DNA of 40,881 nucleotides from Caecitellus pseudoparvulus (GCA_965644315.1 CBFFRQ010000150.1:1-40881); one strand, 5' to 3'; positions 1-32,735 are shown, counted from the first letter of the stretch. The notes: a model not told the origin generated them from the letters alone. Program-made: numbers and translations.

Positions 1-1355
1 TAACCCTAACCCTAACCCTAACCCTAACCCTAACCCTAACCCTAACCCTAACCCTAACCCTAACCCTAACCCTAACCCTAACCCTAACCCTAACCCTAAC
101 CCTAACCCTAACCCTAACCCTAACCCTAACCCTAACCCTAACCCTAACCCTAACCCTAACCCTAACCCTAACCCTAACCCTAACCCTAACCCTAACCCTA
201 ACCCTAACCCTAACCCTAACCCTAACCCTAACCCTAACCCTAACCCTAACCCTAACCCTAACCCTAACCCTAACCCTAACCCTAACCCTAACCCTAACCC
301 TAACCCTAACCCTAACCCTAACCCTAACCCTAACCCTAACCCTAACCCTAACCCTAACCCTAACCCTAACCCTAACCCTAACCCTAACCCTAACCCTAAC
401 CCTAACCCTAACCCTAACCCTAACCCTAACCCTAACCCTAACCCTAACCCTAACCCTAACCCTAACCCTAACCCTAACCCTAACCCTAACCCTAACCCTA
501 ACCCTAACCCTAACCCTAACCCTAACCCTAACCCTAACCCTAACCCTAACCCTAACCCTAACCCTAACCCTAACCCTAACCCTAACCCTAACCCTAACCC
601 TAACCCTAACCCTAACCCTAACCCTAACCCTAACCCTAACCCTAACCCTAACCCTAACCCTAACCCTAACCCTAACCCTAACCCTAACCCTAACCCTAAC
701 CCTAACCCTAACCCTAACCCTAACCCTAACCCTAACCCTAACCCTAACCCTAACCCTAACCCTAACCCTAACCCTAACCCTAACCCTAACCCTAACCCTA
801 ACCCTAACCCTAACCCTAACCCTAACCCTAACCCTAACCCTAACCCTAACCCTAACCCTAACCCTAACCCTAACCCTAACCCTAACCCTAACCCTAACCC
901 TAACCCTAACCCTAACCCTAACCCTAACCCTAACCCTAACCCTAACCCTAACCCTAACCCTAACCCTAACCCTAACCCTAACCCTAACCCTAACCCTAAC
1001 CCTAACCCTAACCCTAACCCTAACCCTAACCCTAACCCTAACCCTAACCCTAACCCTAACCCTAACCCTAACCCTAACCCTAACCCTAACCCTAACCCTA
1101 ACCCTAACCCTAACCCTAACCCTAACCCTAACCCTAACCCTAACCCTAACCCTAACCCTAACCCTAACCCTAACCCTAACCCTAACCCTAACCCTAACCC
1201 TAACCCTAACCCTAACCCTAACCCTAACCCTAACCCTAACCCTAACCCTAACCCTAACCCTAACCCTAACCCTAACCCTAACCCTAACCCTAACCCTAAC
1301 CCTAACCCTAACCCTAACCCTAACCCTAACCCTAACCCTAACCCTAACCCTAACC

Positions 1356-1396
<41 letters not shown>

Positions 1397-4300
1397 CCCT
1401 AACCCTAACCCTAACCCTAACCCTAACCCTAACCCTAACCCTAACCCTAACCCTAACCCTAACCCTAACCCTAACCCTAACCCTAACCCTAACCCTAACC
1501 CTAACCCTAACCCTAACCCTAACCCTAACCCTAACCCTAACCCTAACCCTAACCCTAACCCTAACCCTAACCCTAACCCTAACCCTAACCCTAACCCTAA
1601 CCCTAACCCTAACCCTAACCCTAACCCTAACCCTAACCCTAACCCTAACCCTAACCCTAACCCTAACCCTAACCCTAACCCTAACCCTAACCCTAACCCT
1701 AACCCTAACCCTAACCCTAACCCTAACCCTAACCCTAACCCTAACCCTAACCCTAACCCTAACCCTAACCCTAACCCTAACCCTAACCCTAACCCTAACC
1801 CTAACCCTAACCCTAACCCTAACCCTAACCCTAACCCTAACCCTAACCCTAACCCTAACCCTAACCCTAACCCTAACCCTAACCCTAACCCTAACCCTAA
1901 CCCTAACCCTAACCCTAACCCTAACCCTAACCCTAACCCTAACCCTAACCCTAACCCTAACCCTAACCCTAACCCTAACCCTAACCCTAACCCTAACCCT
2001 AACCCTAACCCTAACCCTAACCCTAACCCTAACCCTAACCCTAACCCTAACCCTAACCCTAACCCTAACCCTAACCCTAACCCTAACCCTAACCCTAACC
2101 CTAACCCTAACCCTAACCCTAACCCTAACCCTAACCCTAACCCTAACCCTAACCCTAACCCTAACCCTAACCCTAACCCTAACCCTAACCCTAACCCTAA
2201 CCCTAACCCTAACCCTAACCCTAACCCTAACCCTAACCCTAACCCTAACCCTAACCCTAACCCTAACCCTAACCCTAACCCTAACCCTAACCCTAACCCT
2301 AACCCTAACCCTAACCCTAACCCTAACCCTAACCCTAACCCTAACCCTAACCCTAACCCTAACCCTAACCCTAACCCTAACCCTAACCCTAACCCTAACC
2401 CTAACCCTAACCCTAACCCTAACCCTAACCCTAACCCTAACCCTAACCCTAACCCTAACCCTAACCCTAACCCTAACCCTAACCCTAACCCTAACCCTAA
2501 CCCTAACCCTAACCCTAACCCTAACCCTAACCCTAACCCTAACCCTAACCCTAACCCTAACCCTAACCCTAACCCTAACCCTAACCCTAACCCTAACCCT
2601 AACCCTAACCCTAACCCTAACCCTAACCCTAACCCTAACCCTAACCCTAACCCTAACCCTAACCCTAACCCTAACCCTAACCCTAACCCTAACCCTAACC
2701 CTAACCCTAACCCTAACCCTAACCCTAACCCTAACCCTAACCCTAACCCTAACCCTAACCCTAACCCTAACCCTAACCCTAACCCTAACCCTAACCCTAA
2801 CCCTAACCCTAACCCTAACCCTAACCCTAACCCTAACCCTAACCCTAACCCTAACCCTAACCCTAACCCTAACCCTAACCCTAACCCTAACCCTAACCCT
2901 AACCCTAACCCTAACCCTAACCCTAACCCTAACCCTAACCCTAACCCTAACCCTAACCCTAACCCTAACCCTAACCCTAACCCTAACCCTAACCCTAACC
3001 CTAACCCTAACCCTAACCCTAACCCTAACCCTAACCCTAACCCTAACCCTAACCCTAACCCTAACCCTAACCCTAACCCTAACCCTAACCCTAACCCTAA
3101 CCCTAACCCTAACCCTAACCCTAACCCTAACCCTAACCCTAACCCTAACCCTAACCCTAACCCTAACCCTAACCCTAACCCTAACCCTAACCCTAACCCT
3201 AACCCTAACCCTAACCCTAACCCTAACCCTAACCCTAACCCTAACCCTAACCCTAACCCTAACCCTAACCCTAACCCTAACCCTAACCCTAACCCTAACC
3301 CTAACCCTAACCCTAACCCTAACCCTAACCCTAACCCTAACCCTAACCCTAACCCTAACCCTAACCCTAACCCTAACCCTAACCCTAACCCTAACCCTAA
3401 CCCTAACCCTAACCCTAACCCTAACCCTAACCCTAACCCTAACCCTAACCCTAACCCTAACCCTAACCCTAACCCTAACCCTAACCCTAACCCTAACCCT
3501 AACCCTAACCCTAACCCTAACCCTAACCCTAACCCTAACCCTAACCCTAACCCTAACCCTAACCCTAACCCTAACCCTAACCCTAACCCTAACCCTAACC
3601 CTAACCCTAACCCTAACCCTAACCCTAACCCTAACCCTAACCCTAACCCTAACCCTAACCCTAACCCTAACCCTAACCCTAACCCTAACCCTAACCCTAA
3701 CCCTAACCCTAACCCTAACCCTAACCCTAACCCTAACCCTAACCCTAACCCTAACCCTAACCCTAACCCTAACCCTAACCCTAACCCTAACCCTAACCCT
3801 AACCCTAACCCTAACCCTAACCCTAACCCTAACCCTAACCCTAACCCTAACCCTAACCCTAACCCTAACCCTAACCCTAACCCTAACCCTAACCCTAACC
3901 CTAACCCTAACCCTAACCCTAACCCTAACCCTAACCCTAACCCTAACCCTAACCCTAACCCTAACCCTAACCCTAACCCTAACCCTAACCCTAACCCTAA
4001 CCCTAACCCTAACCCTAACCCTAACCCTAACCCTAACCCTAACCCTAACCCTAACCCTAACCCTAACCCTAACCCTAACCCTAACCCTAACCCTAACCCT
4101 AACCCTAACCCTAACCCTAACCCTAACCCTAACCCTAACCCTAACCCTAACCCTAACCCTAACCCTAACCCTAACCCTAACCCTAACCCTAACCCTAACC
4201 CTAACCCTAACCCTAACCCTAACCCTAACCCTAACCCTAACCCTAACCCTAACCCTAACCCTAACCCTAACCCTAACCCTAACCCTAACCCTAACCCTAA

Positions 4301-4403
4301 CCCTAACCCTAACCCTAACCCTAACCCTAACCCTAACCCTAACCCTAACCCTAACCCTAACCCTAACCCTAACCCTAACCCTAACCCTAACCCTAACCCT
4401 AAC
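1..4403 (+). repeat. Telomeric repeat tract (TAACCC)n = (TTAGGG)n on the minus strand; left chromosome end
   Basis: Uninterrupted TAACCC hexamers from base 1 to ~4403, with one variant unit (TAAACCC, ~1375-1381). Confidence 0.99.
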
Positions 4404-4623
4404 TTTCCAAATGTCAACCTAATCATAGGTTGTGCATTGCTAACAATGCCTAATCCAGGCGCTCGTGCACCCAAGTGTGGTGTTGCACAGCGCTAGTGCA
4501 TTGCATTGGGTGCGCGGGTGAGCAGCAGTGCGATTTCCGCACGCCACGCTCCCCACGCAGTGCTAAGTGCGGCTCCGGCTGGACGCTGCACCACTGCTTG
4601 CCCGAAACCATTGCTTCATCATC

Positions 4624-7600
4624 ATGTCATCCAAGGCCAGCCAAGTCCTCGGCGTGCTCTTCGCGGACAAGTGCCTGGAGCAGCGTGTGTCAGGGCGGCC
4701 ACGAACAGGCGTGCTGACTGACATGTCACGCCGAGGGGCAGCCCGGACTTTCCAGCTCGGTGGCATGGACATTGACTGCACGGATGGCCAAGATGCATCA
4801 TTTTTCGTCCGCAAGTGGCTTGGCATCTTCGGAGATGAGCTGGAGGCCGAGTTTCCTGGAGCTGCTCCTGTGATGGTGCGCGCTAATTCCGCGCTGAAAC
4901 AATCCGCACCAGGGCAGACCATTCTCCTTGTCACGCTGCCGAGTGACGGTGAAGGCCCCGCCATTGCCAAGTCCCTGCGCGTTGCTGCTGCTGTGCGAGA
5001 AGACTTCATCATCATGTTGAAGGGGGCGGCTCTGTGGGCGTGGTGTACTCCAACACGCGGCAGTTCACGTCAGAGCGCGCCAGGGTCAGCGTGATCGCCC
5101 CTCCCTCTGTAGTGAAGGTTGCTCAAAAGATCTCTGAGGCAGCAACCAACATTGCCTGTGAGAGTGGGGATGTGTCCAAGATCTTGAAGCTTGTCCATGC
5201 CCATGTCACCAACACTCACTCCATCGCCAAGCGTGCTCCAAAGCCTGTCGGACACTCCGTCTCTCCAGAAGATGACGCCTCTGTCGACAAGCTGCCAAGC
5301 ACACTGCCAAAGCCCCTTGCTGAAGGCGGTCCCAAGAAGAAGAAGACACGGAGGGGCAAACGCAAGCCATCGACAAAGAGCTCTCCTCCTCGGCGCTTTG
5401 CTGAACTGTTCAAGGAGGGCGTCGTGACTACTCGCCCCACAGCGCCCTCCCCTCCATCTGCACCCGCCGAGTCGTCAGGCCAAGCTGCTCCTTCCCCTGA
5501 ACATGTCCCTCTTCCGTCCACCAGAGTCAAGCGCCCGACCTTCAGCAGATGGGACTCGCCCAGCCCACGCAAGAGACCTCCTCCCGTGTCCCCGACAGCT
5601 GCGGCACTATCGGGCAGCGGGGCACAGCCACCTCTTGCAAGTCCTGCAAACACGGCACCCACTACGCTGCTAAAACTTGCTGACTGCAGTCGCCGACCAG
5701 CACGGCTTGGACAGGCAAACCTTGACTTGGGTTCCCCCTTGCAGCAACTCCTCGCCTCTGCGCACGCGTTCCGCAATAAGGACCAACGACACTGTGTCCA
5801 GGCCTGCTTTGAAACAGCAGCAGGAGAGCCACTCTTCAATGACGATGACCTTGTCCTTCTTCAACACGCAGCCACCATCCAAGCGGCGCAGACATCCTTC
5901 TGTGCTGTGTTGAAGAAGAGCAGCGCGCGTCACCCTGGCACACCAGACTCGGAGGTCCATGCTGTCTGTGAAACAGAACCTTCCATGCCGACCACCGAGC
6001 AAGACAAGCTTGACCTCTTTCAATCGTTCCTGTACCGACATGCGCCTGATGATGCAGCACTCACCAGTGCCTGTCCACCTGTGCTCCTCCCTGGTCTTCA
6101 TCTCTTGCTCACGCGTATCAACGAGGGCCATCGGGAACTTGAAGGCGGCACAGTGTCTGGACACTGCCTGGTTGATGTCAAGGCAGAGAAAGAGATGACC
6201 TCCGAGGCAAAAGTCTTTGCTGGGGTGTACTTCGCGTTTGCTCTCAGCTTGGTTGACACTGGAGGTGTCTCCCACCTTCAGCTCATTGTCGTCAACGCTG
6301 AGAAGTCCACACTTGTACTGTGGAACCCTGACGAACCCTTCAAGAGCACCAACATTCCAATCGACGGCTGCCTGAACACACTCGACTCGATGGGCATTGA
6401 GTCTGTGTACCGTGTCTCATCCTCCCCGCTGAGTGGCAAGCCGATTCCCTTCAAAGACAGAGTGCGGCTGGCCATGCTGTCCCTCAGGTCTGACTTTCCC
6501 CCACTCCCGTTCGTAGCTGAGGACGAGACTGTCTACCCAAAGACTCTCATCACTGGCAAGACAACACGGGTGTACCTCCCTGTAGGCCGCACCACGCGCC
6601 AACAAGCAGCTGCCGATGAGAGAGCCAAGACGGTTGACCCCATACTGTCACTCATCCCAACATCTGTACAAGTCGCCGACCAGATCAGTAGCGATGCACC
6701 CCATACCCCTGTCGGCCGCGGAAGACACATGACACTCGCACTTGCTGCTTGGAATGTGCACGGCTCCTGCGGCCAGTGTGTCCACGATGTCGTCACCTGT
6801 GTCCAGTCTGTGTGCAGTGCGTCGTCCATGTTGGCACTCTGTGTCACAGAGCCTGGGGGGCACGGCCTGCTCGACACGGAAGTCATGGGCCTTGAATGCT
6901 TCCGCCCAAGCCCGCCTGATCGGCCTGTCGGGCGGAGTGAGGTTGCCTTGCTGCTTGATCGAAGACTCAATGGCTCAGTGATCCCGGGCCTCGACGTTGA
7001 TGGTCGCTGCATAATTGCTTGCTCGATCCCTGCAAGCCCACAACCCATCGCCATCATAGCCACGTACGTACCCAACTGGCACTCTTGGCAGCGAAAGAAG
7101 CCAGTCGCTGATCCGGACACGAAGCTTCCGTACCGGCAAGAGGTTTGGCGGCAGCTTGAGTCTGCTGTTCAACAGCTCCGCCTCACCCACATGATTGTCA
7201 TCATGGGTGACTTGAACACTCATCCAGGTGACGAAGGGGTAGGCACGTGGGGAGCAGATCACTGGGAGAACCGGACCGGCATTCCCGAGCCCACTGAAGA
7301 CATCCTGCAGATGCAGCTCCTCTGCGAGCAAGGCCCACTGATCCCAGCCGGACTTGGTGGCCTGCCAACGCACAGGTATGGTCGGGCTCTGGACCACATC
7401 CTGATGACTGAGGACCTCCACAGTATGTTGAGCAGACCACTGCACATCACAACAACGTTCTCCAGCGGGACGAAAAAGAGTGCCGCTCGACTAGTCCTCA
7501 GTGACCATCATCTTGTTGCAGCAGAAGTCCGAGTGAAGCCTGCCAAGCGAGTGTGGACATCATCCAAGAGCCCCCATGTACAGGCGGTGCCACCCTGGTG

Positions 7601-10600
7601 GACCTCAGCGACAGAGGCTGGGCTGGCAGCGCAAGCGATGTTTCGAGGATCCCTCAGCTCGCGGGCCACCGCGCTCCAGACAGGCAGCGCCGCCCCGAGC
7701 CTATCCTTTCTCAACGGTGCTATCGAAGCTGCGGCTATGGACACACATCGCAAGGCCAAGACCCCACGTGACCCTCTGCCCCAGCTGAAGATGGACATCA
7801 AGGCGGCCAGCGGGCTCAAGAAGTCCATGACTGCACGCGTGTCCAAGCTGCGGAAGACCATTGCCAAGCTGCACCGGAAGCTCGCACTTGCCACCGGTCG
7901 GCATCCTCAGCCAGACCACGCCCGTGCCATCCGAGAGGGAATCTCCATGGCCACTGAAGAGCTACACGCCACGCTTCAATGCCGCAAGGATGCAATGCGG
8001 AAGTGCACGAGGCTTGTGAAGAAGAAGCGACATGTCACTCTGTCCAGGATCCGAGCACGCTTGAGGGAACTCGCTGTCACGGATCCCTTCACTGCCCACC
8101 AACACATCAAGCGCCTGTCAGGTCGAGGTCGTCGAGCCCGTCGAGCTCCCATCAGGTCCGTGAAGTCCATGCAGGGAGTGCTCATCTCCTCCCCTGATCT
8201 GGTGAAGGAGGAGGTTGCCAAGCAGATGTCTGGCATCCTGAGTCACAACAAGCCCAGGCCAACATCGCTGAAGTACGGGCTGGCAAGGTTCCTTCCCTCA
8301 GCCCAAGAGTCCTTCACCCCGCCAGTGACATGGCTTCCCTCCAAGAAGCAAGTCAAAGTCCTCATGGGATCACTCAGCTTGCATCGACACCCAGGCTCTG
8401 GCAAGTTCCAATCAGAGCACATCAAGTATGCTGGGCCAGGCTTCCAAGACATCTACTCCCAAGCCGTCATCCAAGCGTTGCAACACGGCACCTGCCCGCC
8501 AGACTACCATGCAGGCATTGGGTCACTCATCCCCAAGAAGACGAGTGAAGCTGGGCGGCCTCGCACATACCGCTTGATTGTATGCCGCCCCCTCCTGCGA
8601 AGCTCTTCTTCTCAGTGGCCGCTGCATGCCTGGAGTCCTGGATGCAAACATGGGTGTCGAAGGAGCAGGCTGGCTTCACTCGACACCGCAACACGCATGA
8701 GCACATCTTGGCTCTCCAAGAGGTGATCAAGGGCCACCTGCGACAGTCAACAGCGCCAGTGCAAGTCCTGGTACTCTTCGTGGACTTCCGGGGAGCATTC
8801 GACTCTGTGAGCCACGCAGCCATCACAGAGATCCTTGAGGCTGCCTCCCTCCCTGCGCCACTCCTGGCCGTCATCAAGGAGTACATGTCCAAGGCGACGG
8901 TCTCCATCAACACGCGCCATGGTCTTTGTCGCCCCCTTCCTGTCAGCAATGGTGTCCCCCAAGGAGGAGCTCTGTCCCCCCTCCTCTTCAAGGTTGCGAT
9001 AGATGTGCTGTCGCAAAGGCTCCACGAGATGCCCCTCCAAGGCATCCAGGGAGTGGGCATCCCAACACCAGCAGGCCATGTCACCCACACCCTGTATGCA
9101 GACGACCTGGCCTGCATCGCAACGTCTGCCACGGCCTTGCACCGAATCTTCGTAGAGGTGAAGGCCATCGCTGCCCGGGTTGGCCTTGCCATCAACCCGT
9201 CGAAGTCCGGGGTCATGATCCTTGCCAACTCCGTGCGAGGCAGCCGGACACCAGTCAGTGAAAGGAAGAAGTTGGTGTGGCGCTCGGCTGCCCTCAAAGC
9301 GGGCAGCATGCTGAAGGTTGGCACCAAGTCCATCCAACGGGTGGCCGAGTACACCTACTTGGGTGTGCCGATGTCCGAACATCCTGCCAAGACCCGTGCA
9401 CTTACCCTGCAACAAGCTGGGCTTGCTTGCATCCAAGCCGGGTTCACTGCGGGCGCGCTGCTCAGTGCCACCTGGCTCGATGTGCAGCAGCGGCACCTGG
9501 TTGGGTATGCCACTGTCACGTCAGCCGCCGACTACATGCTGTCCACCCAAGCCAACAGTTCCCTGCTTCCGCTGCGCGATGTTGACCGCGGCGTCGCCCT
9601 CGCCTTGGACAGGACCCAAGTCGGCTCGCAGAGTGCACTCATGCGCCCCCACAGCTACGCCAAGCTGGCTCTATGCGGAGTCCTGCCTGCCCACATCCGC
9701 TCCACGCAACTGCGGACTGGGATGTTTGTCAAGGCTCTCCGGATGCTGCACTCGGACACCCCTCTTGCCCGAGCTCTGTGCCTGACCATCCCGCAGGCCC
9801 TTGACCTTATGCCTGCTTCGATGTCGACGACCTTCATCGTCGACACCATTGCTGATGGAGGTCGACTCCGGGCTGCCAGTGTCCCTGCTCCGTGGGCACT
9901 GCATGCCCTCTTGGACCTCTGGCTCATGGGCTGCATGCCAGACCTTGCACAGCTTCGGCTTGCATGTGCACCTGGCTCTGAGCATGCTGCCACAGCCCTT
10001 GCCCAAGTCCTTGCCGGACTTAAGACCACCCCGGGCCTCCACAGGTCTGCGGTGGTTGGGGTGGCTGCCAGCGAGACGTCGTCCATGGCCGAACCCCCGG
10101 CCTTCACGGCAGACACCCCCTGGGCCCTGCGTCGCCAAGTCCTCGCGTCGTATCTTCATGTAGCCCAGGCAGTGCCGAGTGCAGCTGCCCACTACACCAC
10201 CGACAGCCGAATCCCCCAAGTGCAGAAGCCCAGGCCGTATCATCTTGGGCCTGGTGCGCAGCACTTCGTGTGGCTACATCCACTGCCACACGGGGTGAAC
10301 CCCCTCTTCTGGGTCTGTCCTGATGACAGGCCCACCAGAGTGATGGTCCATCACTTCCAGACCTTACAGCTTCTTCATGGGGGGGACAGTGCCACTCTGT
10401 ACGAGTGCTGTCCGATTTGCGGACTCAACACCGATGTACAGCTGCACGTGCACATCCTGCTGCACTGCACCCACCACGAACTCACCATGGCACGCCAACA
10501 CACGATGACCAAGTTCAGAGAACTGGCCAACAGGTCAGCTGTGCCCGAGTCCGCGGCGGGCCAAGTGCAGTGCCTGCCCATCCCCCCCAAGATCTGCCAC

Positions 10601-11187
10601 GCCCTCCTTCGTGCCCCCGACCCAGAGCCGCGAAGCCTGCGGGACCTCGAGGTCCTCCACAGGCTCCTGCTCTGCGGGCAGTGGCCTCACCGGTGGGGGC
10701 TGGCCGACGAAGAGCAGCTTGTCTCTATGAAAGAGGCGGCTGTCCTCTCCCACCCCCACCTCGTCCACCGTGCTGGTCCTTGCCGTGTCCGTGCCCCAGC
10801 TGTATGGCAAGACATCCTGCGCAGCGCGGTTGAGTTCACAGCAAAGGCGTGGCGGGTCACAGTCACTTACATGTTGCGTATGACCGATGCCCACCACCTT
10901 GCTGTCCAGAGGCATGCTGAGTACCTGTGGTGGGCAGTACATGGGCGCGGGGCGCCGCTGCCTGGCCGCACGCAGCCAGTGCGGTCAGCGGCCACGCGGC
11001 ACACGCGCAGGCCCCGCACTCGCCGCAGGGCACGCACCTTTTCCCTGCCAAGGCTGGCCAAGTGCCGTCCACGGAGGGCAAGGTCCAGAGGACGCTGCAG
11101 CACTTCATGGGGCCTCAGCCAGCCCATGCAGACACTGATGGTGAGGGGGAAGGGCCCGATGGTTCCTGTGAAGAGAGCGAGGAGTAA
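4624..11187 (+). CDS. Retrotransposon polyprotein (~2190 aa reconstructed): N-terminal ORF1-like region, APE endonuclease, reverse transcriptase, CCHC finger; interrupted by 1-nt deletions at ~5015, ~8590 and ~11040
   Basis: Joins track ORFs 4567-5094, 5034-8726, 8582-11263 and 10927-11187. The shifts at ~5015 and ~11040 are located by homology to copies 2 and 3. The shift at ~8590 restores the RT motif YRLIVCRPL.AKLF. ATG 4624 aligns with ATG 12366 of copy 2. Confidence 0.8.
6730..7530 (+). other. Apurinic/apyrimidinic-like (APE/EEP) endonuclease domain
   Basis: Motifs AWNVHG, LCVTE, EVALLL, ATYVP, MGDLN, ALDHIL and SDH occur in canonical order. Confidence 0.92.
8350..9370 (+). other. Non-LTR reverse transcriptase domain
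   Basis: Motifs LIPKK, YRLI, QAGF, LFVDFRGAFDSVSH, NGVPQGGALSPLLF, LYADD, GLAINPSKS and YTYLGV. Confidence 0.96.
10405..10475 (+). other. C-terminal CCHC zinc finger of the retrotransposon ORF
   Basis: CPICGLNTDVQLHVHILLHC matches the Cx2C...Hx4C finger typical downstream of non-LTR RTs. Confidence 0.8.
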
Positions 11188-12009
11188 GGCGGAACGCAGG
11201 CGTGCGGGCGGGGAGTGGAACAGCCACGCTTGTGGCCGCGTCTACCCTCCACGAGTGTCCTGACGTGATGAACCTGTGTGAAGCGTGGTGATAACCACGG
11301 TAGCCCGAAGCAGATGCCCAAGACCTTACCTTTTACTTACTACATAGCCTGCGAGTAGCAGTGGAGTGAGCGGGAGCGTGCCTCGGGCCGCGGCGCGTGT
11401 GCAGCCGCAGTGCTGCACGGCCGCGGCCCGGATGGCGGCTGACGATGAAGCAAGCTCACTCACCACGAAACCAGGGCGTGACGGGTTGAAGAAGAAGGTC
11501 CTTTTCCTTTCTGTATCCCCCTTGATGCGCGCGATGCGCTCTGTGGCGCGGGCGCGTGTGTGCGCACGGGTGCTGGTGTGCGCGATCGAATTCCGCACCA
11601 CGCACCCGGCCGAGTTCCCGCGCAGAGGCGGAGCACACACCTCATGAAGGGCGCAGAGAGGCCTATGAGGGCCACAGAGGAGGTGGGTGAGGAATTTGGA
11701 TTATGATCTGTTGTCAAGACTGCGCGGATGCCTGGGTGTGCTCTGGTGTGCCCCAGGTGTCTGGCGCTGGCGGAGCAAGGGATGAAGTGTAGCGGAGGAG
11801 GGCCAAGATGATGAATTGGAGCGGGCAGGGACCTGCCCTAGCAAGTGGCGGCAGATATAACGGGTGCAAGCCTGTGTTTGTTGCGAATCCGCGCCAAGCG
11901 GTAGCCGCTGTGGCGTCCTACATGTGCAGAGGTGCATTGTGGGGCGCCCGTGTGACGCTCAAGCTGTACGGTGCCAAGCTGTGCCGAGGTGAAATGCATT
12001 GTGAGTTGC

Positions 12010-12017
12010 TAACCTAA
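12010..12017 (+). repeat. Short degenerate telomeric spacer TAACCTAA
   Basis: Lies between the 3' end of copy 1 and the 103-bp fragment. Confidence 0.8.
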
Positions 12018-12120
12018 GTGTCACTGCATTCTGTTGTGGCGCAGGTGGCACCACATGTCCAAGCCCAAGCTGTACCATGATGTAGCCTGCATGGAGGCAA
12101 TCTGCAATGCATTGAGTAGC
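12018..12120 (+). mobile_element. 103-bp 3'-terminal fragment identical to the 3' end of copy 2
   Basis: 12018-12120 is identical to 14963-15065; both are followed by TAACCCT. Confidence 0.93.
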
Positions 12121-12142
12121 TAACCCTAACCCTAACCTAAAC
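12121..12142 (+). repeat. Internal telomeric spacer TAACCC TAACCC TAACC TAAAC
   Basis: Read directly from the sequence; it abuts the 5' end of copy 2. Confidence 0.9.
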
Positions 12143-15065
12143 TTTCCAAATGTCAAGCTAATCACAAGTTGTGAAGTGCTAACATTGCCTAATCCAGGCG
12201 CTCGTGCACCCAAGTGTGGTGTTGCACAGTGCTTGCTGGTTGGGTGGTGCGCACCGGGGCGGGGTAGTGCGAATTCCGCACACCATCGCACCGTGGCTCC
12301 CAGTTTGCGCCCTCGGTCGGGGCATGCACCTGGGATCGACATCAAAAGCATCATTGACAAGCATCATGAACGCCCAAGTGGATCAAGTCCTGGGGGTCCT
12401 CTTCGTGGAGGGGTGCCTGAAGCGCAAGCAAGTGCTCGGCCCCAGAACAGGTGTCTTCACTGACATGCCACGTCGGGGTGCCGCACGCACCTTCGAGCTT
12501 GGAGGACCCCTGCCCAAGACTGATCATGATAGTTCATCTTCGGCACGGGACATGTGGCTCGAGGTCTATGGGGAAGCCGCCGAACGGCTGATCCCAGGGC
12601 TGAGTGCGGAATTCGGCAACGCCAATGCGGCCCTGCGCCAGGGACCCACCGGATCGCCAACCATCCTCGTCACGCTCGGAAGTGAGGGTGATTCACCAAC
12701 AGTGGCACGTCAACTTCGCATTCTTGCTGCTCAAGAGGACGACTTCGCCATTCGAGTCGGCCAAGGTGGGTTCGTCGCCGTGGCCTACACCAACACCAAG
12801 CAGTTCGCATCGGCGAAGGCGAAAGTGAAGGTGAAGGCCCACCCCACCGCCATCCAAGTGGCCCACCAAGTGACCAAGGAAGCAACCGAAATCGCCTGCC
12901 AGTCAGGTGATGTTGCCAAGGTCATGTGCCTCGTTAGGTCCCACTTCGACCATGGCCCCGTGCCAGCCCAAGCCGTCCGTCCCAGTGTCAGACAATCCGT
13001 CCCCTCCGAGGGTGATGCACCTGTCGACACCAAGACACCATCGACCTGGACTGACACTCAGCTCGACAAGGCACCGAAGAAGAAGAAGACCCGTCGAGGC
13101 AAGCGAGGAAAGGGCAAGTCAGCCGGACGATCCCTCACCTTCGAGGACGTCTTCATCAAGAACGTCCGGCCACCTGCACCTCGACCAACCTCACCACCTG
13201 CCACCCAAGGCTCACCCAAAGATACCGTCACCACCCCTGTGGTGCATGCCATGTTGCCTTCATCAAGGGTGCAGCGGGGCGTCGACCGCAAGTGGCCGTC
13301 CCCCACCCCGTCGGGCGAGGCAAGCCCCGAGGTGCACCGGTATCGGCCGTCTGCAGCAGCAGCATGGGAGGTGATCACAAGGGTGGTGCCTCTTCATGAC
13401 AGTGTGCGGACACCCGAGCACCTGGCCGAGTACCCCATCAAGCCTGGCCCTCTGGCCGACCTGCTGTCATCGACCCACGTGTACTCTAACGTGGGGGGCG
13501 GGCCTGTGTCCAGGCCTGTCTCGAGACGGCAGCAGGGGAGAGGGTCTTCGAGGCTGGGGACCTCCTCCTACTCCAGCATGCAGCCACCATCAACGCTGCC
13601 CAGCTTGCCTTCAAGCACATGGTCAGGCAGCTGGAGGGGGTGGTCAGTGACTCGTCCAGCTCGGACATCATGGACGTCGGCCAGAAGCCACCCTCCCCCT
13701 TCCGCTCAGACGGGCAACGGGTGGCCGTCTTCCGCAACATGCTGCACCAGCACTCGCCGGATGACACCTTCCTGGCCCCAGGTACACCACCAGTCCTGCT
13801 TCCCGGCCTGCACCTGCTCATCGACCGCATCAACCAAGGGTACCGTGCCCCAGCCGGGCATGATGACCTTGGCCAGGCCGGCGTCGACCCCAGCCAGGTT
13901 GATGAAGAGGGTGACCAAGAGGGGCACCTCGACGGAGTGCTGTATGCCTTCGCACTTCGAGAGGTGTGGACCGACAACACGGCCCATCTGCAGCTCATCC
14001 TCGTCGACCATGATCGAGGCAAGCTGGTGCTGTGGAACCCCGACATCCCTGACCTCCATGACGAGCTGCCCCTGCACAAGTGCATGACCCGGCTGGCAGC
14101 CGAAGGCATCAACGTCTTGTACCGGATCTGGACCACACCCGAGGCGGGCAGTCCAGCACCCTTCCGGGACAGGCTTCGAGGGGCACTCCAGTCTCTCCGA
14201 GATGACTTCCCCCCCCTGCCTCACAAGGCCACCGACGGCACCGTGCACCCCCAGACCCTCATCGCTGGCAAGGGCACAAGGGTGGCCATGCCTCATGGGC
14301 GGATGACCCGACAGCAGGCCGCCACCCTGGAGGCTGAGGTCAAGGACCCCCTCAAGCGGCTGGTGCCTGAAGACGGCGAGGGTCGCCTGCCCAAGGTCAA
14401 GGATGTGCCCCACATCTCGATCGGGCAGATGGGTGGACGCCTGATGTAAGTCACCTGTGGGGGCATACTCCCTGTGCCACACATGACTGAAGCTTTGTGT
14501 CGCGACCGACGCACATAGCTGACATCGGACATTGGAAAGTCCAACCCAACCTCACCATCACCAACCCAACATCGATACCAACACATCAGGACTCGGCTCA
14601 GTGGAAGGGGAAGGCACTTGCAGCAAGATCTGTGAGGCCGCCCCCAAACCTGAGCCGAAGGGACAGCCGGGCTGGGTCGTGTGCTTGCATCTCAGCAACA
14701 CCCAGTCCGTGTCGAGTCCATATCCTCCAGCCCACACCGCCACCCAAGCCAAGCAAGTCGGGTCTCCACCCCTGGACATCGGACCGAGACGGACGAGACT
14801 GGACTGGACGGACAAGACAAGAGTGGACCGAGACCTGGACCTACACCTCAAGACCATCCCACCGGGGCGGGCGCTGAAGCGCCAAGACAGACGGCGACTT
14901 ATACAACGGACACGAGTCTGTGCTAGTCGCAAAGCCGTGCAAGCGGTGCCGTCGTGGTGTCTGTGTCACTGCATTCTGTTGTGGCGCAGGTGGCACCACA
15001 TGTCCAAGCCCAAGCTGTACCATGATGTAGCCTGCATGGAGGCAATCTGCAATGCATTGAGTAGC
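12143..15065 (+). mobile_element. Non-autonomous relative (copy 2): complete 5' and 3' ends, only the N-terminal region, no APE or RT
   Basis: First ~90 bp nearly identical to the 5' end of copy 1. Its protein is homologous to the first ~700 aa of copy 1. It has the family 3' end followed by TAACCCT. Confidence 0.88.
12366..14449 (+). CDS. ORF1-like protein (~694 aa) of copy 2, with one 1-nt deletion in the G run at ~13495
   Basis: Blocks shared with copy 1: QVLGVLF, PRTGV.TDM.RRGAARTF.LGG, IAC.SGDV.K, KKKTRRGKR, CVQAC.ETAAGE, PPVLLPGLHLL..RIN.G, HLQLI.V...LVLWNP, SLR.DFPPLP, GR.TRQQAA. It stops (TAA) where copy 1 enters the APE domain. Confidence 0.8.
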
Positions 15066-15072
15066 TAACCCT

Positions 15073-16399
15073 CCTGAGGCGGCCGCAGTCTTGAGCAACC
15101 CTCATGCTGCTCTTCGCGGCCCCTCAGGTCTTCTCCGTCCTCCCAAGTACTGGAAGCAAGCTCTGGCTGCCGCCACGAGCTTCTCTGTATCTGCGTGGGA
15201 CGTGCTGGTAACGTGTATGCTTGGACGTACCTCACAGGTTGATCGTCATATCCAGGTGCACGCCAGGTATCTCTGGTGGGCTGCACATGGCCGCACGAGT
15301 CCACTCCCGGGCTTCTCCACTCCTGATCCCAGCGCTGTGAGAAAGCATACACGACATGTTCGCACGCGGCGCTTTGAGCGAACTTACTTTCCTGTCAGGG
15401 CTGAGCGCAGGCCCCCTCGCTCCTTCACGAGGCAGGCCACTCTCCTGGACTTTGGCCTCACACGGCCCGAAGCCCGTGATCACCCTCCATCGCCCTCTTC
15501 CAACTCGCCCACGTCCTCCGAGGTATCCCTGGAAAGTCCATCGTCCTCTGAATAGGCGGGGATCTGTGCGAGACAAAGCGCAGAAGCAGGCAAGCTTACG
15601 TATGTATCGTGGTAAGAACCACGGTCGTGGTTGACTGCGAAGGCGAGGCTGCTACATGCGCTGTCCTTGATGCTTGGTTTTCTCTGTGAAAAGTAAGGTT
15701 ATTGGAAAGTAAATGTTGTCAGTATACGTACCTGTGTCTTCGGGGTCCACAGAAAGGTCCTCTGGCGGCTCTGCGATGGTGCGGGCGGAATTTGGGAGCG
15801 TGAACAGGTGGGCGCAGCGTGCAACGCCGCGCGCGGAACTTACAGGTCCGCCAGGTCCTGATTGATGATGGGGCTGGGTCATCTGTGAACAAGGGAGCAT
15901 GCTGGTGTGTTCTTGGTGGGCGGGGGGCGTTGTTCCGGCGGTGCGCGCTGCTACCACCGGCGTGGTGCAGTGCAACACCGCCGTGAAACGCAACCCCCCA
16001 AAGGCGGCCACCGAGGCTCAGTTCAGCGCGCAGTGGCCCCAGGCACACGTGCAGTGCCTGGCGAGGGCCAGGAGATATGGGGGGATTCAGAATTATGATG
16101 CGAAGTGTGGACTGGGACGAAGTAAGAGTGGGCCCGGCCCCCTCTGGCTCAGCCGACTGAGCCGAGAGGGCGCGGGAGGGACAGTTCAGCACGTATGGGC
16201 GGGCGCGGGCGCGCCCTAGCAAGCGGCGGCTTATACAACGGACGTATGTCCGTGATGGCTGCAGACCCACGAGAGTGGGAGCCGCTGTGGTGCCTACTAC
16301 AGTGCATTCGTGTGCTGTGGTACGCAAGGCACCACGAGTGATGCCCAAGCTGTACCGTGCAAGAGTGTGCGGAGGCAAGTTGCAATGCATTGAGTGAGC
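15073..16399 (+). mobile_element. 5'-truncated copy 3 (ORF C-terminus plus 3' UTR)
   Basis: 15073-15555 encodes EAAAVLSNPH...HARYLWWAAHGR..PLPG...RTRR..RTYFP, homologous to the copy 1 C-terminus. The 3' end GCAATGCATTGAGTGAGC is followed by TAACCCCTAACC (16400-16411). Confidence 0.9.
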
Positions 16400-17017
16400 T
16401 AACCCCTAACCGAAGCTCTGAGGTGAGGCAAGCTTGAACACAATGTGCCGGATTAACAGCACACGCTCTGCACCATCATGCACTCACGTTTTCTAGTGTT
16501 TTATGTACTATGTGCACCGTTGCACAGCTTCGGCGAACCACACGAGTGGCTGTCTTAAGAGTTACGCGAATGATGCAAAAACATGTCTCACTTATCTGAA
16601 ACCGGAGTATCACAGACAAATTGAAGACAGGAGCTCGCGGTGCCTGCACCAGCAGACAAATCTGACAATACGCTCCATGACATTCTATCAACTACTATTT
16701 GGTTGCCCGCTCCTCCCACATCCGGTACAGAGCCAAAGGAGGATCGCATCTCACCCGTCAGAGCGACCCAGTGGCAAACAACACTGAGGCCATCCACGAA
16801 TCCATCACTATGATGTGCAATGTCTTACAAGTGTAATCTTCAACACTAAATACAATGTGCAGCTAGCCTTCATGCCAAGCGCTGTGGGCTTCCCGCGAGC
16901 ACGTTGTACCTCGCCGCGCTCACATTCCCAGGCAAGCTGCGAATTCAGCACGATCACGAGGCCACAGCTCAACACAATCGGTCTCCTTCACAATACACTT
17001 GCCGTACATATCTCAGT

Positions 17018-23353: not shown

Positions 23354-23722
23354 AACTCAGACCATACCTTGCCATGGGTGACAGAAATGCAGCATGAAAA
23401 CTAAACCACAAGGAAAGTGTTTTGTACACTATCAGTTTGAGCCTGCTTCTCAGCGTACTGCGTCAGGAGGTGGTGCGTGTCGCGCTGGCGGGTCGCATTC
23501 CGTTGCGATTTCCGCACAAATATCTCTGCCGCATTCTTCGCACAAGTACCGATATGGCGGTTGCATCTGCATTTCCACAGGCTTGGCATCATCATCGTTT
23601 ATACCTTCCCTTGCTGCATACCTGTTGCTCTTCTGCGCGACATTTTGGAGCTTCACTCACACGAGCCTGCTTCTACCTGTGGCTCCAACTTCGGCGTCGT
23701 TTGCATCCTGGCGTCACGTATC

Positions 23723-24658
23723 ATGGCAACTTTTGATGATCCGGCACAGCTCAAAACCCAATGGAAAGCCGCTTGTGAAAGAAGTGATGTTTTTCAGCTG
23801 TGGCTTATCTTGGGGCGAGTCAGCGCCCAGTCTTCAGCTTTGGCAGAGAGGCTGGACAGTTCAGACACAACAGATGGGTTTCTAGTCGCTTGCCGATGGG
23901 GGGAGGTGGAGTTGATGCGTGAGCTGCTAGCCCTGGCAGGTGATCTTGCGGTGGATGTGCACGCGCCAGATGGGGGTGGACCTGAGGCCGCCTTCCGAGC
24001 CGCATGCACCAATGGCGACACAGACGTCGTGTGCGAGCTGCTGGCCCTCACTGGAGCGCGGGAAGTGGATGTACATGCAGCGGATCGGGCTGGACCCGAG
24101 GCCGCCTTCCGAGCCGCATGCTGCCTTGGCCGTGCAGACGTCGTGTGTGAGCTGCTGGCCCTCACTGGGGCGCGGGAAGTGGATGTGCACGCGGCGGATC
24201 GGGCTGGACCCGAAGCCGCCTTCCGATTGGCATGCCGTGGTGGCTACAAGGACGTCGTACGAATTTTGTTGGGCCTCACCGGGGCACGGGAAGTGGATGT
24301 GAATGTGTCAGATTGGGCTGGACCTGAGGCCGCCTTCCGACGAGCATGTGAGAGTGGCCACACAGACGTCGTGCGTGAGCTGCTGGCCCTGACTGGGGCG
24401 CGGGAAGTAGATGTGCATGCGGAGTATTTGGGGAAGCCTGATGCCGCTTTTCGGTTGGCATGCAGGAAAGAACATACAGATACCATGCGAGAGCTCCTCG
24501 CCCTCACTGGTGACAGAGCCATCCCACCTCACATCTGGCTCCAAGAAGGGGAGTCTGCCACGCAAGCTGCGCGTGATGCAGTGTGGGCTGGCACCAGCAC
24601 TCGGCGTGGGCGGCGTGCGATGCTCATGCTAAAAACTCGTGGTGCGGGATGTGCGTGA
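23723..24658 (+). CDS. Ankyrin-repeat protein, paralog A (39-aa repeats)
   Basis: Repeats of VDVHA.D..GPEAAFR.AC..G..DVVRELLALTG. ATG 23723 chosen by alignment of the W..AC...D N-cap with paralogs B and C. Confidence 0.88.
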   Translation: MATFDDPAQLKTQWKAACERSDVFQLWLILGRVSAQSSALAERLDSSDTTDGFLVACRWGEVELMRELLALAGDLAVDVHAPDGGGPEAAFRAACTNGDTDVVCELLALTGAREVDVHAADRAGPEAAFRAACCLGRADVVCELLALTGAREVDVHAADRAGPEAAFRLACRGGYKDVVRILLGLTGAREVDVNVSDWAGPEAAFRRACESGHTDVVRELLALTGAREVDVHAEYLGKPDAAFRLACRKEHTDTMRELLALTGDRAIPPHIWLQEGESATQAARDAVWAGTSTRRGRRAMLMLKTRGAGCA

Positions 24659-25465
24659 GGAACGGTCCCAATGCAGTCACCAATTGCGACAGCGCTTTTT
24701 CCTCTCGCACACCCTCCAACTCCCCAGGCGCCCAGCCAGAATCCTGCATTGCAGAACAGCACCAACTTTCAGCGCTTGAACGGCATTCAAGACATAACTA
24801 TGCCCACTGCTTGGAATGTGGTGTCATTTTGTCTTTTAAGGCACGCAAGTCATGTGCATCTCGCACATTTCGTCGCTGCCAAACACTCCCAAGCGGCTGG
24901 GAACGTTACAGAGACGTGCATCCTGCAAGGCAGCATCAGCACCTTTCTCTGTAGCAGCACAGCACACTAACACAGATCCACACCTTCCGGTTGAGAGGTG
25001 CAGTCAATGAAGGTGGCAACGCGTCGCCGATCTCCGCGACGCCACGAAACACCCTCCAGACGAGCTCGCCCCTTCCCGCCCTTAACAACGCTCGCAGCCT
25101 CGCCCTACCCGCTGTCTATCACACTGCAAAGTGGCAGTCGGGCGTTGAATCCCGTGGCAAGGTGTGGCAAGGTCAGGGGTACCGGCACAGCAGCTGGTGT
25201 GGCCTTGCAACCACGCAGTTGCCCCCAGCACCGCCGTCCCACTGCCTGACATGCGCTCACAACCTTAGCTGTGTGCAGCATGGTTGGCTTGGGTGTGAAG
25301 TGCCACCACCTCAGTGAGGGGAGAAAGCGTATGCTTTGAAGGTAGTGCTGTGTCTGCAAAGGCACCCTGCTTGGAAGTCACAAGTTAGCGTAGGGACCTG
25401 TTTCCCGCACCGTAGGGATCCAGGCAAGCCTCACGACTGACCCCATGCTTCTGACTTTTCGACAA

Positions 25466-26602
25466 TTATGCAGTACTATTCGCTGCTCTGAACAGCAGCA
25501 GTGTCCTGCGCCCGTTGCGAGTGCTTGTACCGTCCCAGACCGCGTCCTTTGCCGCCTGAAGGGCTTCCCTTGCGATCTTGCGCCTGGCTCGACTTGGCAC
25601 AGCACGGATGCCAGTCAGGGCAAACAGCTCTCGGAGCACAGCAATTTGGCGGCGCCTGTGCGCTTCACAAAAGGCAGCGTCGGGTCCTTTCTCGTCTCTT
25701 GCGCGTACATCAACGGCTCTTTCGCCCGACAGGCTCAACAGCTCGCGCACCACGTCCACCTGGCCAGCCGCACAGGCAACGCGAAAGGAGGCCTCAGTCC
25801 CCCGCCTGTCCTTGGCGTGCACGTCAACCTTTCGGCCACCGTTGAGCGCGAGAAGGATCTTCACAACGTTCAAGTGGCCGCCTTGACATGCCAGCCGGAA
25901 GCTGGACTCCAGCCCCTGGTGGTCGGCAGCGTTCACGGCCACTTCCCTGGGCGCTGACAGGGACAGCAGCTCGCGCACAACGCAAGCATGCCCACATTGG
26001 CAAGCCAATCGAAAGCCTGCATCACTGCCCATGTTGTCATTTGCCCGCACATTCACCCTGCGGCTTCCAGTCAGCGCAAGCAACTCACGCACGATTGGGA
26101 CGTGGCCGCCAGCGCAAGCCCACCTGAAGCCAGCCTCTGGACCAGCGTTATCACCTGCGTGCACATCGACCGCAGCATCTCCAGTCAAAGCCAGGAGTTC
26201 TCGCACAACTCCAAGGTGGCCATTGGCACAGGCCAGCTGAAAGGCAAGCTCACTCCTCGCGTGGACATCAACACGCCGAGCTCCTCCCAGCGCCAACAGC
26301 TCACGCACAATCTCCACGTGGCCCTGCAAGCACGCCTCTCGAAAGCCAGCCTCTGGTCCACCCCTGTCGCCAACGTGCACATCCACTTCTTGGCTTCCTG
26401 ACAGTGCAAGCAGCTCACGGAGCAAAGGAAGGTTGCCTTTCCGACACGCCAAGATGAAGCTCTCATTCGTCTCTTCGCTTGTCAGCCCTTCCACAAACGA
26501 CACAGCTTGCTGACAAGTCCCTCTTATGATTTCTAGCATGAGCTCATCATCGCTTGTGCAGCAAGCATCGCTCCAAAGCGTGGGTGCGTCTGCAAAGTCC
26601 AT
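25466..26602 (-). CDS. Ankyrin-repeat protein, paralog B
   Basis: Same repeat as A, same N-cap (LWSDACC) and same C-terminal DAVW.GTSTR.GRR motif. Confidence 0.88.
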   Translation of the reverse strand: MDFADAPTLWSDACCTSDDELMLEIIRGTCQQAVSFVEGLTSEETNESFILACRKGNLPLLRELLALSGSQEVDVHVGDRGGPEAGFREACLQGHVEIVRELLALGGARRVDVHARSELAFQLACANGHLGVVRELLALTGDAAVDVHAGDNAGPEAGFRWACAGGHVPIVRELLALTGSRRVNVRANDNMGSDAGFRLACQCGHACVVRELLSLSAPREVAVNAADHQGLESSFRLACQGGHLNVVKILLALNGGRKVDVHAKDRRGTEASFRVACAAGQVDVVRELLSLSGERAVDVRARDEKGPDAAFCEAHRRRQIAVLRELFALTGIRAVPSRARRKIAREALQAAKDAVWDGTSTRNGRRTLLLFRAANSTA

Positions 26603-26982
26603 ATCGTGCGATTTGGCGTGGTGGGTCAGATTCCGCACCGATGCCTTCTTCACCGTGTTAGGCTGACGCAGCTTGGAAAGTGCCGGGTAGGCCCCACAGT
26701 AAATTGAACTGTTCTGTGCAATTGATCTGATCCAGTGCGTTCCCGTTTGGTCTACGTTTGATCGAGGGCGAAGTCGAGGAAGGTGTGATGGGGCGTGGCC
26801 TGCGCTTCGCAGACTTTCAACAACAGCAACTCTGGTATCCCCACAAATTTCAACGAGAAGATACGCACCCTACTCACTTGGCCAGTCTTGTTTTAATTTC
26901 ACCGTGCAGTAAGGCCTGACAATTGCCACGCAGGGCCCCTGCCTCGGCAGCAGCGGAAATTGAACCACATTGTGCTCTCTAC

Positions 26983-32540: not shown

Positions 32541-32735
32541 ACTGCTAGTGTAAGGAACTGTAAAATGTAAGCCTGAGGGCATGCTGCTGCGCGGTCAAAT
32601 AAATTTGGGGCCTCTGCGGGCAGAAACTGGGTGAACAGGCTTGCTGCCACACATGTGACAATTCGGAATCACTCAAGTTTCGAGCAACCAAGACACCCAG
32701 CATCGCCAATAAGCATACTTTTCGAGCCACACTGG

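Follow-up and report, generated by a model that had tools for sequence, protein, structure and literature searches.

Polar arrays of a probable telomere-specific superfamily of APE-type non-LTR retrotransposons and their reverse transcriptase-less coding partner at chromosome ends of Caecitellus pseudoparvulus

The stretch CBFFRQ010000150.1:1-40881 in the assembly GCA_965644315.1 of the protist Caecitellus pseudoparvulus, referred to here as the window (40,881 nucleotides, read on one strand), begins with a telomere. Between this telomere and unique DNA lies a stack of repeated units that all point in the same direction. This raises the questions of what these units are and how they came to be placed on the end of a chromosome that also carries telomerase-type repeats. 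The analysis indicates that they very probably belong to a telomere-specific superfamily of retrotransposons without long terminal repeats (non-LTR retrotransposons), which encode an apurinic/apyrimidinic endonuclease (APE) and a reverse transcriptase (RT) and are accompanied by a non-autonomous coding partner.

The features of the window are compiled in Table 1. The original prediction, which was made from the sequence of this stretch, placed four head-to-tail units between a canonical telomere and unique DNA; they were found at 4403-16411, directly behind the terminal (TAACCC)n tract. All four units, named A, A', B and C, lie on the + (C-rich) strand with their 5' ends toward the chromosome end. 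Each ends in ...GCTAAC and continues into 3-19 nt of in-phase telomere sequence, and neither poly(A) nor an A-run is present at any of the four 3' ends; this polarity, the telomeric 3' junctions and the missing poly(A) had all been anticipated. Unit A starts with CTTTCCAAATG..., which abuts ...CCCTAA, and it ends with ...GAGTTGCTAAC. A repeat scan of the window showed that only the termini are common between units and that there are no LTRs. The array is composed of three diverged lineages, namely lineage I (unit A), B and lineage II (unit C), in agreement with the prediction of at least three subfamilies at this end. It stops sharply at 16411; neither DNA nor protein profiles detected element-related sequence in the remaining 24.5 kb (16412-40881). 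The window also contains an age gradient. The distal units, A and B, share 99.9-100% identity with other copies and are young, while the proximal unit C, which is 93% identical to the copies on contigs C197 and C44, is older.

Matches to the elements were collected from the entire assembly (30.6 Mb in 215 contigs). The best candidates were scored (51 of 141, 63 of 159 and 40 of 92), and copy numbers are hence lower bounds. The scored matches, 58 to the RT, 63 to B or the N-terminal protein and 40 to the 3' end of B, are spread over 59 different contigs. None of these 161 matches is more than about 23 kb away from a contig end, and all have the sense strand directed inward, i.e. + at left ends and - at right ends. 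Among the best-scored candidates there was no interior match on ten contigs with a size of 0.24-1.35 Mb. This distribution agrees with the predicted telomere specialist, and the family is in all likelihood telomere-specific. Identity between copies from different ends amounts to 99.9-100%, their open reading frames (ORFs) are intact, and every array that was examined from the chromosome end opens with a terminal TAACCC tract. Furthermore, the element is present, nearly unchanged, in marine metagenomes of several studies. The HSP90 protein of this genome points to the stramenopiles; its best named matches come from oomycetes and diatoms (73-75% identity), and one metagenome protein is 99% identical to it. 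A search for TERT found an open frame of 1389 aa on contig C77, away from the contig ends, with a Telomerase_RBD domain (79 bits) and RVT_1 downstream. TERT is present and intact, and the elements coexist with telomerase.

Unit A appears in the window as three overlapping frames. A comparison with an intact copy (C154:324-7940) revealed zero mismatches and four 1-bp homopolymer deletions, which are G5/G6 at 5022, C5/C6 at 8588, T4/T5 at 11039 and C2/C3 at 12015. The missing G (5021) and C (8587) are present in Logan contigs from three independent runs, one of them a marine metagenome; a run with many 1-bp losses (X3) seems to resemble error-prone long-read data. Because the breaks are 1-bp under-calls that are absent from the C154 copy and from three other runs, the ORF1/ORF2 appearance of A is an assembly artefact. 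Separate ORF1 and ORF2 proteins, or programmed frameshifting in A, are ruled out by the same under-calls. The predicted product of A is one protein of 2188 aa, in which Pfam places Exo_endo_phos at aa 804-962 and RVT_1 at aa 1303-1582; the length of this single ORF ranges from 2159 to 2336 aa across the autonomous lineages. Unit B differs from intact copies solely in a G6/G7 run at 13493. The same break occurs in about 22 other B copies and may be either a systematic error or a true variant. Since 1-bp under-calls in homopolymers create false frameshifts, gene calls of this assembly will be fragmented.

The best PDB matches of the RT domain are R2Bm (63 bits) and human L1 ORF2p (48 bits). A Cys/His motif 3' of the RT, such as that in A, is a feature of many ORF2 proteins from long interspersed nuclear elements (LINEs). 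The Exo_endo_phos match in A amounts to 24.7 bits, just over the cut-off of 24.5, and the motifs WNV, TE, YVPN, GDLN, LDHIL and SDHH are invariant in the endonucleases of four lineages. A profile made from these four APE domains found no LINE endonuclease, including those of TRAS1 and R1Bm, at E<=1 among all PDB sequences; its best matches are a plant APE and ExoIII with E values of 0.14-0.16. The autonomous elements can be assigned to the APE-type non-LTR (LINE) retrotransposons, as had been proposed, because they combine a LINE-type RT, an APE with its catalytic residues, a lack of LTRs and constant 3' ends with variable 5' truncation.

The relationship of the RT to known proteins is remote. 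In a search of 5.8 billion proteins the nearest outside relatives are only 25-32% identical (best E value 6e-20). A tree with the 36 best database matches groups the four lineages into a clade of their own with a support of 100 in the Shimodaira-Hasegawa-like approximate likelihood ratio test (SH-aLRT) and a stem of 1.74 changes per site; in this quick tree, which was built without references for named clades, no supported sister of the clade is found among the 36 matches. Together with the result of the endonuclease profile, this speaks for a lack of any match to a described family; the original prediction, too, had not recognised the domain architecture among described telomeric elements.

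The best outside match to the RT profile is an APE-RT element (L058:1-4879, protein P0002) in a Logan contig of run ERR12387313, from an organism with 44% GC. It has an A-run and GGTTAGGG before it and (TTAGGG)n after it; because of these flanks it is a polyadenylated telomere-repeat-associated LINE, in opposite SART-like orientation. This element is not sister to the present family in the RT tree. An ENA metagenome contig (L057:1-12691, GC 61%) holds two divergent RT elements in opposite orientation, one of them with an upstream ORF of 714 aa that has no Pfam match; telomere repeats are absent from this contig, and nothing in it resembles the N-terminal protein of the present family.

The protein upstream of the APE was considered separately. 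A profile search of 1.84 billion representatives returned only one fragment of 48 aa, a comparison with the two nearest outside RT elements gave no match, and exact-match look-ups of the window proteins in public collections found none. By these searches the N-terminal protein is considered an orphan. Its two domains, N1 and N2, were modelled with AlphaFold (AF2) on an alignment of five sequences, and the models are of medium quality. In N2 the predicted local distance difference test score (pLDDT) is 60-90 over residues 360-660. The best Foldseek matches are Josephin domains (E 0.03), nearly all of the top 30 matches in VIA are clan CA peptidases (best Z 7.2, under the caution line of 8), and the nearest language-model clusters are Peptidase_C58 and C39 (0.82-0.85). 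Five sequences with a mutual identity of only 41-50% all have C381, H541 and N558/D560 (B numbering). In the model C381 opens a helix (381-390), H541 stands just before a strand (542-548) and N558/D560 just after another (553-557); this corresponds to the order and spacing of Cys, His and Asn/Asp in papain. N2 is on these grounds a probable papain-fold (clan CA) cysteine peptidase. The order of the motifs had also suggested an Ulp1-type peptidase, an idea that was abandoned in view of the fold searches, which favour papain folds of the Josephin/C39/C58 type. For the core of N1 (residues 40-140, pLDDT 60-88) the VIA matches include the RNA recognition motif (RRM) of LINE-1 ORF1p (Z 5.6, 91 residues aligned) and other RRMs (Z 4-5.5), mixed with unrelated helical proteins. 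As a lead only, the N1 core may be RRM-like and a candidate RNA-binding module. One may speculate that a gag-like RNA-binding part is freed from the enzymes by self-cleavage, for which a conserved P-x-x-P-V/I-G boundary would be a candidate site.

Next we consider the diversity of the family. Lineages I (represented by A), II, III and IV were compared as full-length genome copies. Lineage V was taken from an ENA metagenome scaffold, where an intact ORF of 2159 aa is flanked by CCCTAA repeats and has the same termini as the genome lineages. The five autonomous lineages show a mutual identity of about 46-68%. Among lineages I-IV the N-terminal region is 41-51% identical (except for II and IV with 67-81%), the APE 54-68% and the RT 62-84%; lineage V is 45-53% identical to these four over its full length. 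Synonymous sites are saturated between lineages, and the ratio of nonsynonymous to synonymous substitution rates (dN/dS) is 0.06-0.33 where it can be computed. Because of this saturation the lineages must have coexisted for long, and with the intact TERT frame this supports the predicted long coexistence with telomerase-type repeats.

The protein of B is collinear with the first 700 aa of the A protein (41% identity) and stops where the APE would begin. It is 41-50% identical to the proteins of the autonomous lineages I-IV and about equally distant from each of them. This indicates that B is an old lineage of its own, and it rules out a recent origin of B from A by deletion. B is the most abundant unit; it has at least 50 copies and 92 candidate 3' ends, and identity among nearly all of them is 99-100%. 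The original prediction had assumed autonomous and ORF1-only members. An RT-less partner does exist, but there is no separate ORF1; what B retains, according to its alignment and the models, is the N-terminal third of the single polyprotein with the RRM-like domain and the probable papain-fold cysteine peptidase.

All these elements have common ends. Over the first ~110 nt (CTTTCCAAATGTCAA...; window 4403-4512) lineages I, II, IV, V and B show an identity of about 90-95%, which is far above the identity of the adjacent coding sequence and is maintained despite the saturation of synonymous sites between lineages. Three TTAG-like motifs occur on the G strand of this module within 60 nt. The module is probably an internal promoter or an end-recognition module; this is the simplest reading because the upstream context varies. 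Full-length copies have the 5' junction CCCTAA/CTTTCC, and across the junctions compared the 3' ends read GCTAAC and go on in telomere phase with no A-run. In every lineage the last ~210 nt are conserved, and together with those of B they adopt a common predicted multi-helix fold. Of its 46 predicted pairs 14 show compensatory changes, and 97.5% of the cells are paired, compared to 31-46% when the partners were slid; the observed values were reached by 0-1 of 500 shuffles, with the limit that few independent events underlie this covariation because the sequences represent only about five independent lineages. Since B has this structure too, there is a concrete basis on which it could be copied in trans. 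The predicted RNA ends with GCUAAC(CC), which is telomerase-template sequence and complementary to the TTAGGG strand.

The junctions between units bear on how the arrays were built. Nine distinct downstream junctions are found among ten lineage-I copies. The loss at the 5' end of truncated copies ranges from 190 nt to all but 17 nt (the shortest fragments measure 17-107 nt) and the 3' ends are intact, as expected for target-primed reverse transcription. The telomere tracts that follow 3' ends have, in 35 distinct junctions, a length of 0-67 nt with a median of ~7 nt, and 12 of the 35 have 3 nt or less; terminal tracts in turn measure 260-4400 nt. In several cases only 0-2 nt separate a 3' end from a truncated element or from unique DNA; no telomeric target is left there for an endonuclease to cut.

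These data can be accommodated in the following scheme. The autonomous element would be transcribed from its conserved internal 5' module, with a predicted start at CTTTCC, and would encode one polyprotein of ~2,100-2,300 aa with an RRM-like domain, a basic linker, a probable papain-fold peptidase, an APE, an RT and a Cys/His motif. The poly(A)-less RNA would end in the structured 3' untranslated region (UTR); its terminal ...GCUAAC(CC) could pair with the TTAGGG strand, and the 3'-OH of the G strand would prime reverse transcription. Such priming would explain why the element is without exception found on the C strand, its 5' end facing the chromosome end and its 3' end running in phase into TAACCC. 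B, which is devoid of APE and RT and has kept the N-terminal protein and both termini, would be copied in trans by the autonomous RT. On balance we favour the view that most additions occurred onto ends that had eroded to fewer than ~11 repeats or to none, and that these ends were then re-capped by telomerase. Priming of the cDNA on eroded ends is favoured because internal tracts are 0-67 nt long and terminal tracts 0.26-4.4 kb. Telomerase would extend the cDNA end ...GGAAAG, from its terminal G, with TTAGGG, and this fits the constant 5' junction of full-length copies. Recombination between ends would also spread blocks of the array.

Several observations weigh against this scheme. The APE is intact and conserved, which argues that nicking matters and fits less well with priming at ends. 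At least one internal tract, of ~410 nt and directly behind a B 3' end (C5:10582-10994), is long. An identical A-filler-B junction, GCTAACC-GGCAAGGA-CTTTCC with an 8-nt filler, is present at C32 (L002:4916-4960) and at C151 (L009); because it is shared, some of the spread must be due to segmental duplication or break-induced replication (BIR) and not to transposition. The fold assignments of N1 and N2 come from medium-confidence models with Z values below 8. Old, degenerate interstitial copies could escape the scoring of best candidates. Finally, no RNA run was found to carry the element.

The first two of these points would be expected if, in the manner of TRAS and SART, the APE nicked the G strand at a fixed site in duplex repeats, such that classical target-primed reverse transcription inserted the element internally. 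The short proximal tracts would then have to result from recruitment of the ribonucleoprotein beside resident elements, for example with the 5' module as a landing pad, or from later loss of tract. All catalytic motifs of the APE are kept and this domain is better conserved than the N-terminal region (54-68% versus 41-50% identity); the telomere phase is fixed at both junctions and the 5' module is conserved across lineages, all of which would suit a nicking mechanism. Still, the 12 of 35 junctions with 3 nt of telomere sequence or less, some of them with none, contain no telomeric target, and random sites in tracts of at least 260 nt would make it extremely unlikely that 35 of 35 tracts are 67 nt or shorter. 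Young copies, which are 100% identical to others, also have short tracts, and slow decay of the tracts is for this reason no explanation. Internal insertion by nicking is in our view unlikely, albeit by no means negligible.

The identical junction at C32 and C151 could also be taken to mean that the elements are immobile and that the arrays are subtelomeric repeats which are homogenised and spread by recombination, BIR or gene conversion only. Concerted evolution could account for the near-100% identity among dozens of copies, and the MoTeR arrays of Magnaporthe are known to expand by BIR (PMC7367193). It is nevertheless improbable that recombination alone made these arrays, given the nine distinct junctions among ten lineage-I copies, the variable truncation points next to constant 3' ends, the many copies whose ORF runs without a break over 2,100-2,300 aa and is under purifying selection, and the different truncation junctions in wild metagenomes. 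The idea that a long-read assembler piled repeats on contig ends, with an unreal order and polarity, might appeal to the homopolymer errors and to the small size (8-70 kb) of many array-bearing contigs, but it can be dismissed as extremely improbable, since Logan contigs of independent runs, including marine metagenomes, have the same junction types (element 3' end, telomere repeats and truncated element in that order), an ENA metagenome scaffold carries a full element between telomere repeats, and arrays of this kind are also found at the ends of large contigs (0.24-1.35 Mb).

Two other junctions differ in sequence from those in the window. The 3' end of lineage III (C201, L055) reads ...GAATAGCT without AAC and is followed by a filler, GGGCAAGG, which is similar to the filler at C32 and C151. 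On C154, ~18 kb from the end (L010), a lineage-I 3' end with 9 nt in telomere phase is joined to very AT-rich DNA, TTTATAGTAATTAG..., which is unlike the ~60% GC genome.

Addition to eroded ends, if it is the rule, allows a further and more doubtful thought, namely that the elements constitute a second, retrotransposon-based system of end healing at essentially every chromosome end of a telomerase-positive protist. When erosion has left about ten repeats or fewer of a tract, or none, the template-mimicking RNAs would pair with the G strand and be copied onto it, and telomerase would re-cap the product; the RT of the element might even copy its CUAACC end repeatedly and in this way seed repeats. 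If true, this tentative view would mean that a convergent, HeT-A/TART-like mutualism has been caught while it coexists with telomerase.

Table 1. Features of the telomeric array in the window (positions count from the first nucleotide)
Feature	Position	Strand	Remarks
Terminal telomerase-type tract (TAACCC)n	1-4402	+ (C-rich strand)	One irregular unit near 1377
Unit A, full-length autonomous element, lineage I, 7.6 kb	4403-12013	+	99.95% identity to C154:324-7940
5' UTR of A	4403-4623	+	First ~110 nt common to several lineages and B
Single ORF of A, 2188 aa in intact copies	4624-11187	+	Window copy broken at 5022, 8588 and 11039
N1 domain of A	4624-5267	+	Core aa 37-145 modelled as RRM-like; candidate ORF1p/gag-like RNA-binding module; weak
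N2 domain of A, probable papain-fold (clan CA) cysteine peptidase, Josephin/C39/C58-like	5673-6722	+	Models, invariant residues
APE-type endonuclease domain of A	6756-7547	+	Pfam Exo_endo_phos, catalytic motifs
RT domain of A	8529-9367	+	Pfam RVT_1, 103 bits
Cys/His (CCHC-like) motif of A, 3' of RT	10400-10480	+	Read off the sequence
Structured conserved 3'-terminal ~210 nt of A, last bases GCTAAC	11804-12013	+	Common to B and all lineages
Unit A', extreme 5'-truncated copy of 107 nt	12018-12124	+	100% identity to B 3' end
Short internal telomere tract at the A'/B boundary	12125-12141	+	
Unit B, partner without RT or endonuclease, 2.9 kb	12142-15069	+	ORF 12366-14449, 693 aa in intact copies
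Unit C, 5'-truncated lineage II copy: C-terminal coding part and 3' UTR	15073-16403	+	Most proximal and most diverged unit
Telomere-phase remnant of 8 nt at the boundary of unit C and unique subtelomeric DNA	16404-16411	+	

Past the array the subtelomere contains ordinary genes. Three ORFs with ankyrin repeats are clustered at 23477-28410. Beside this cluster are an ORF of 1305 aa with a DMFA2_C domain (28665-32582, - strand) and an ORF of 1685 aa that reaches the edge of the window.

Telomere-specialised retrotransposons are central to our understanding of how telomerase and retroelements relate to each other and of how telomerase came to be replaced in flies. The Drosophila elements HeT-A, TART and TAHRE (Jockey clade) resemble the present family in that they form head-to-tail terminal arrays with 5' ends outward, with likely addition to chromosome ends, and in that an abundant RT-less partner encoding a gag-like protein occurs beside the RT elements. 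The autonomous members have kept an APE in both systems; in Drosophila these are TART and TAHRE. The fly host has no telomerase, whereas here TERT is intact and a TTAGGG cap is present on every array. Unlike the fly elements, those of C. pseudoparvulus have no oligo(A) at the 3' end and a single polyprotein instead of gag and pol ORFs; moreover, the N-terminal protein, with its peptidase-like domain, is an orphan, and the RT is remote from any database protein.

TRAS1 and SART1 of Bombyx (R1 clade) are, like the elements here, of the APE type, specific for telomerase repeats, inserted in a fixed orientation and resident in a telomerase-positive host. SART1 is known to depend on a structured 3' UTR, and the present family probably does so as well. 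TRAS and SART elements have two ORFs and a poly(A) tail and are located inside long duplex (TTAGG)n, in contrast to the one ORF, the lack of poly(A) and the tracts of 0-67 nt described here. The APE profile of the family, as mentioned, did not match the endonuclease structures of TRAS1 and R1Bm.

MoTeR1 and MoTeR2 of Magnaporthe, together with the FoTeRs of Fusarium, also lie in TTAGGG telomeres with the 5' end nearest to the chromosome end. Their head-to-tail arrays contain short telomere tracts, and a short partner has both termini in common with the RT element, as B does here; BIR also reshuffles these arrays (PMC7367193). MoTeR1, however, belongs to the CRE/SLACS type; its endonuclease is restriction-enzyme-like and lies C-terminal to the RT, and it has no APE (PMC7367193), whereas the APE of the present elements is N-terminal to the RT. 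MoTeR1 further differs by long variant telomere repeats at its 5' end, and MoTeR2 by an insert without obvious function; the ORF of B is conserved and homologous to the autonomous N-terminus.

Other telomere-associated retroelements are GilM/GilT of Giardia, Zepp of Chlorella, Tx1-1_ACar of Anolis and Athena/Coprina of rotifers and fungi (PMC10088271), none of which is reported from stramenopiles. What they have in common with the present family is that they accumulate at or in the telomerase-made telomeres of telomerase-positive eukaryotes, often in polar arrays. The Gil elements are not known to have an APE, and Zepp carries a poly(A) tail. Athena and Coprina belong to the Penelope-like elements and are deficient in endonuclease; here an APE is present and the RT matches LINE RTs.

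The known cases of telomere specialisation are few and come from insects, Giardia, Chlorella, two fungi, a lizard and rotifers (PMC10088271). No description of a telomeric LINE in stramenopiles was found in the full-text literature searched, and a survey from 2023 lists none (PMC10088271). The family is apparently undescribed, and it appears to be a real and well-supported telomere-specific LINE superfamily. To the known cases it adds a deep-branching stramenopile lineage in which nearly all chromosome ends are occupied by at least five autonomous lineages and a HeT-A-like coding partner while TERT is intact. With their template-like RNA 3' end, the very short internal tracts and the orphan N-terminal protein, these elements offer a natural system for asking whether such residents are telomere parasites or a back-up. 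Furthermore, the organism is represented in culture-derived runs as well as in marine metagenomes, and the polymorphism of the arrays can be studied in nature.

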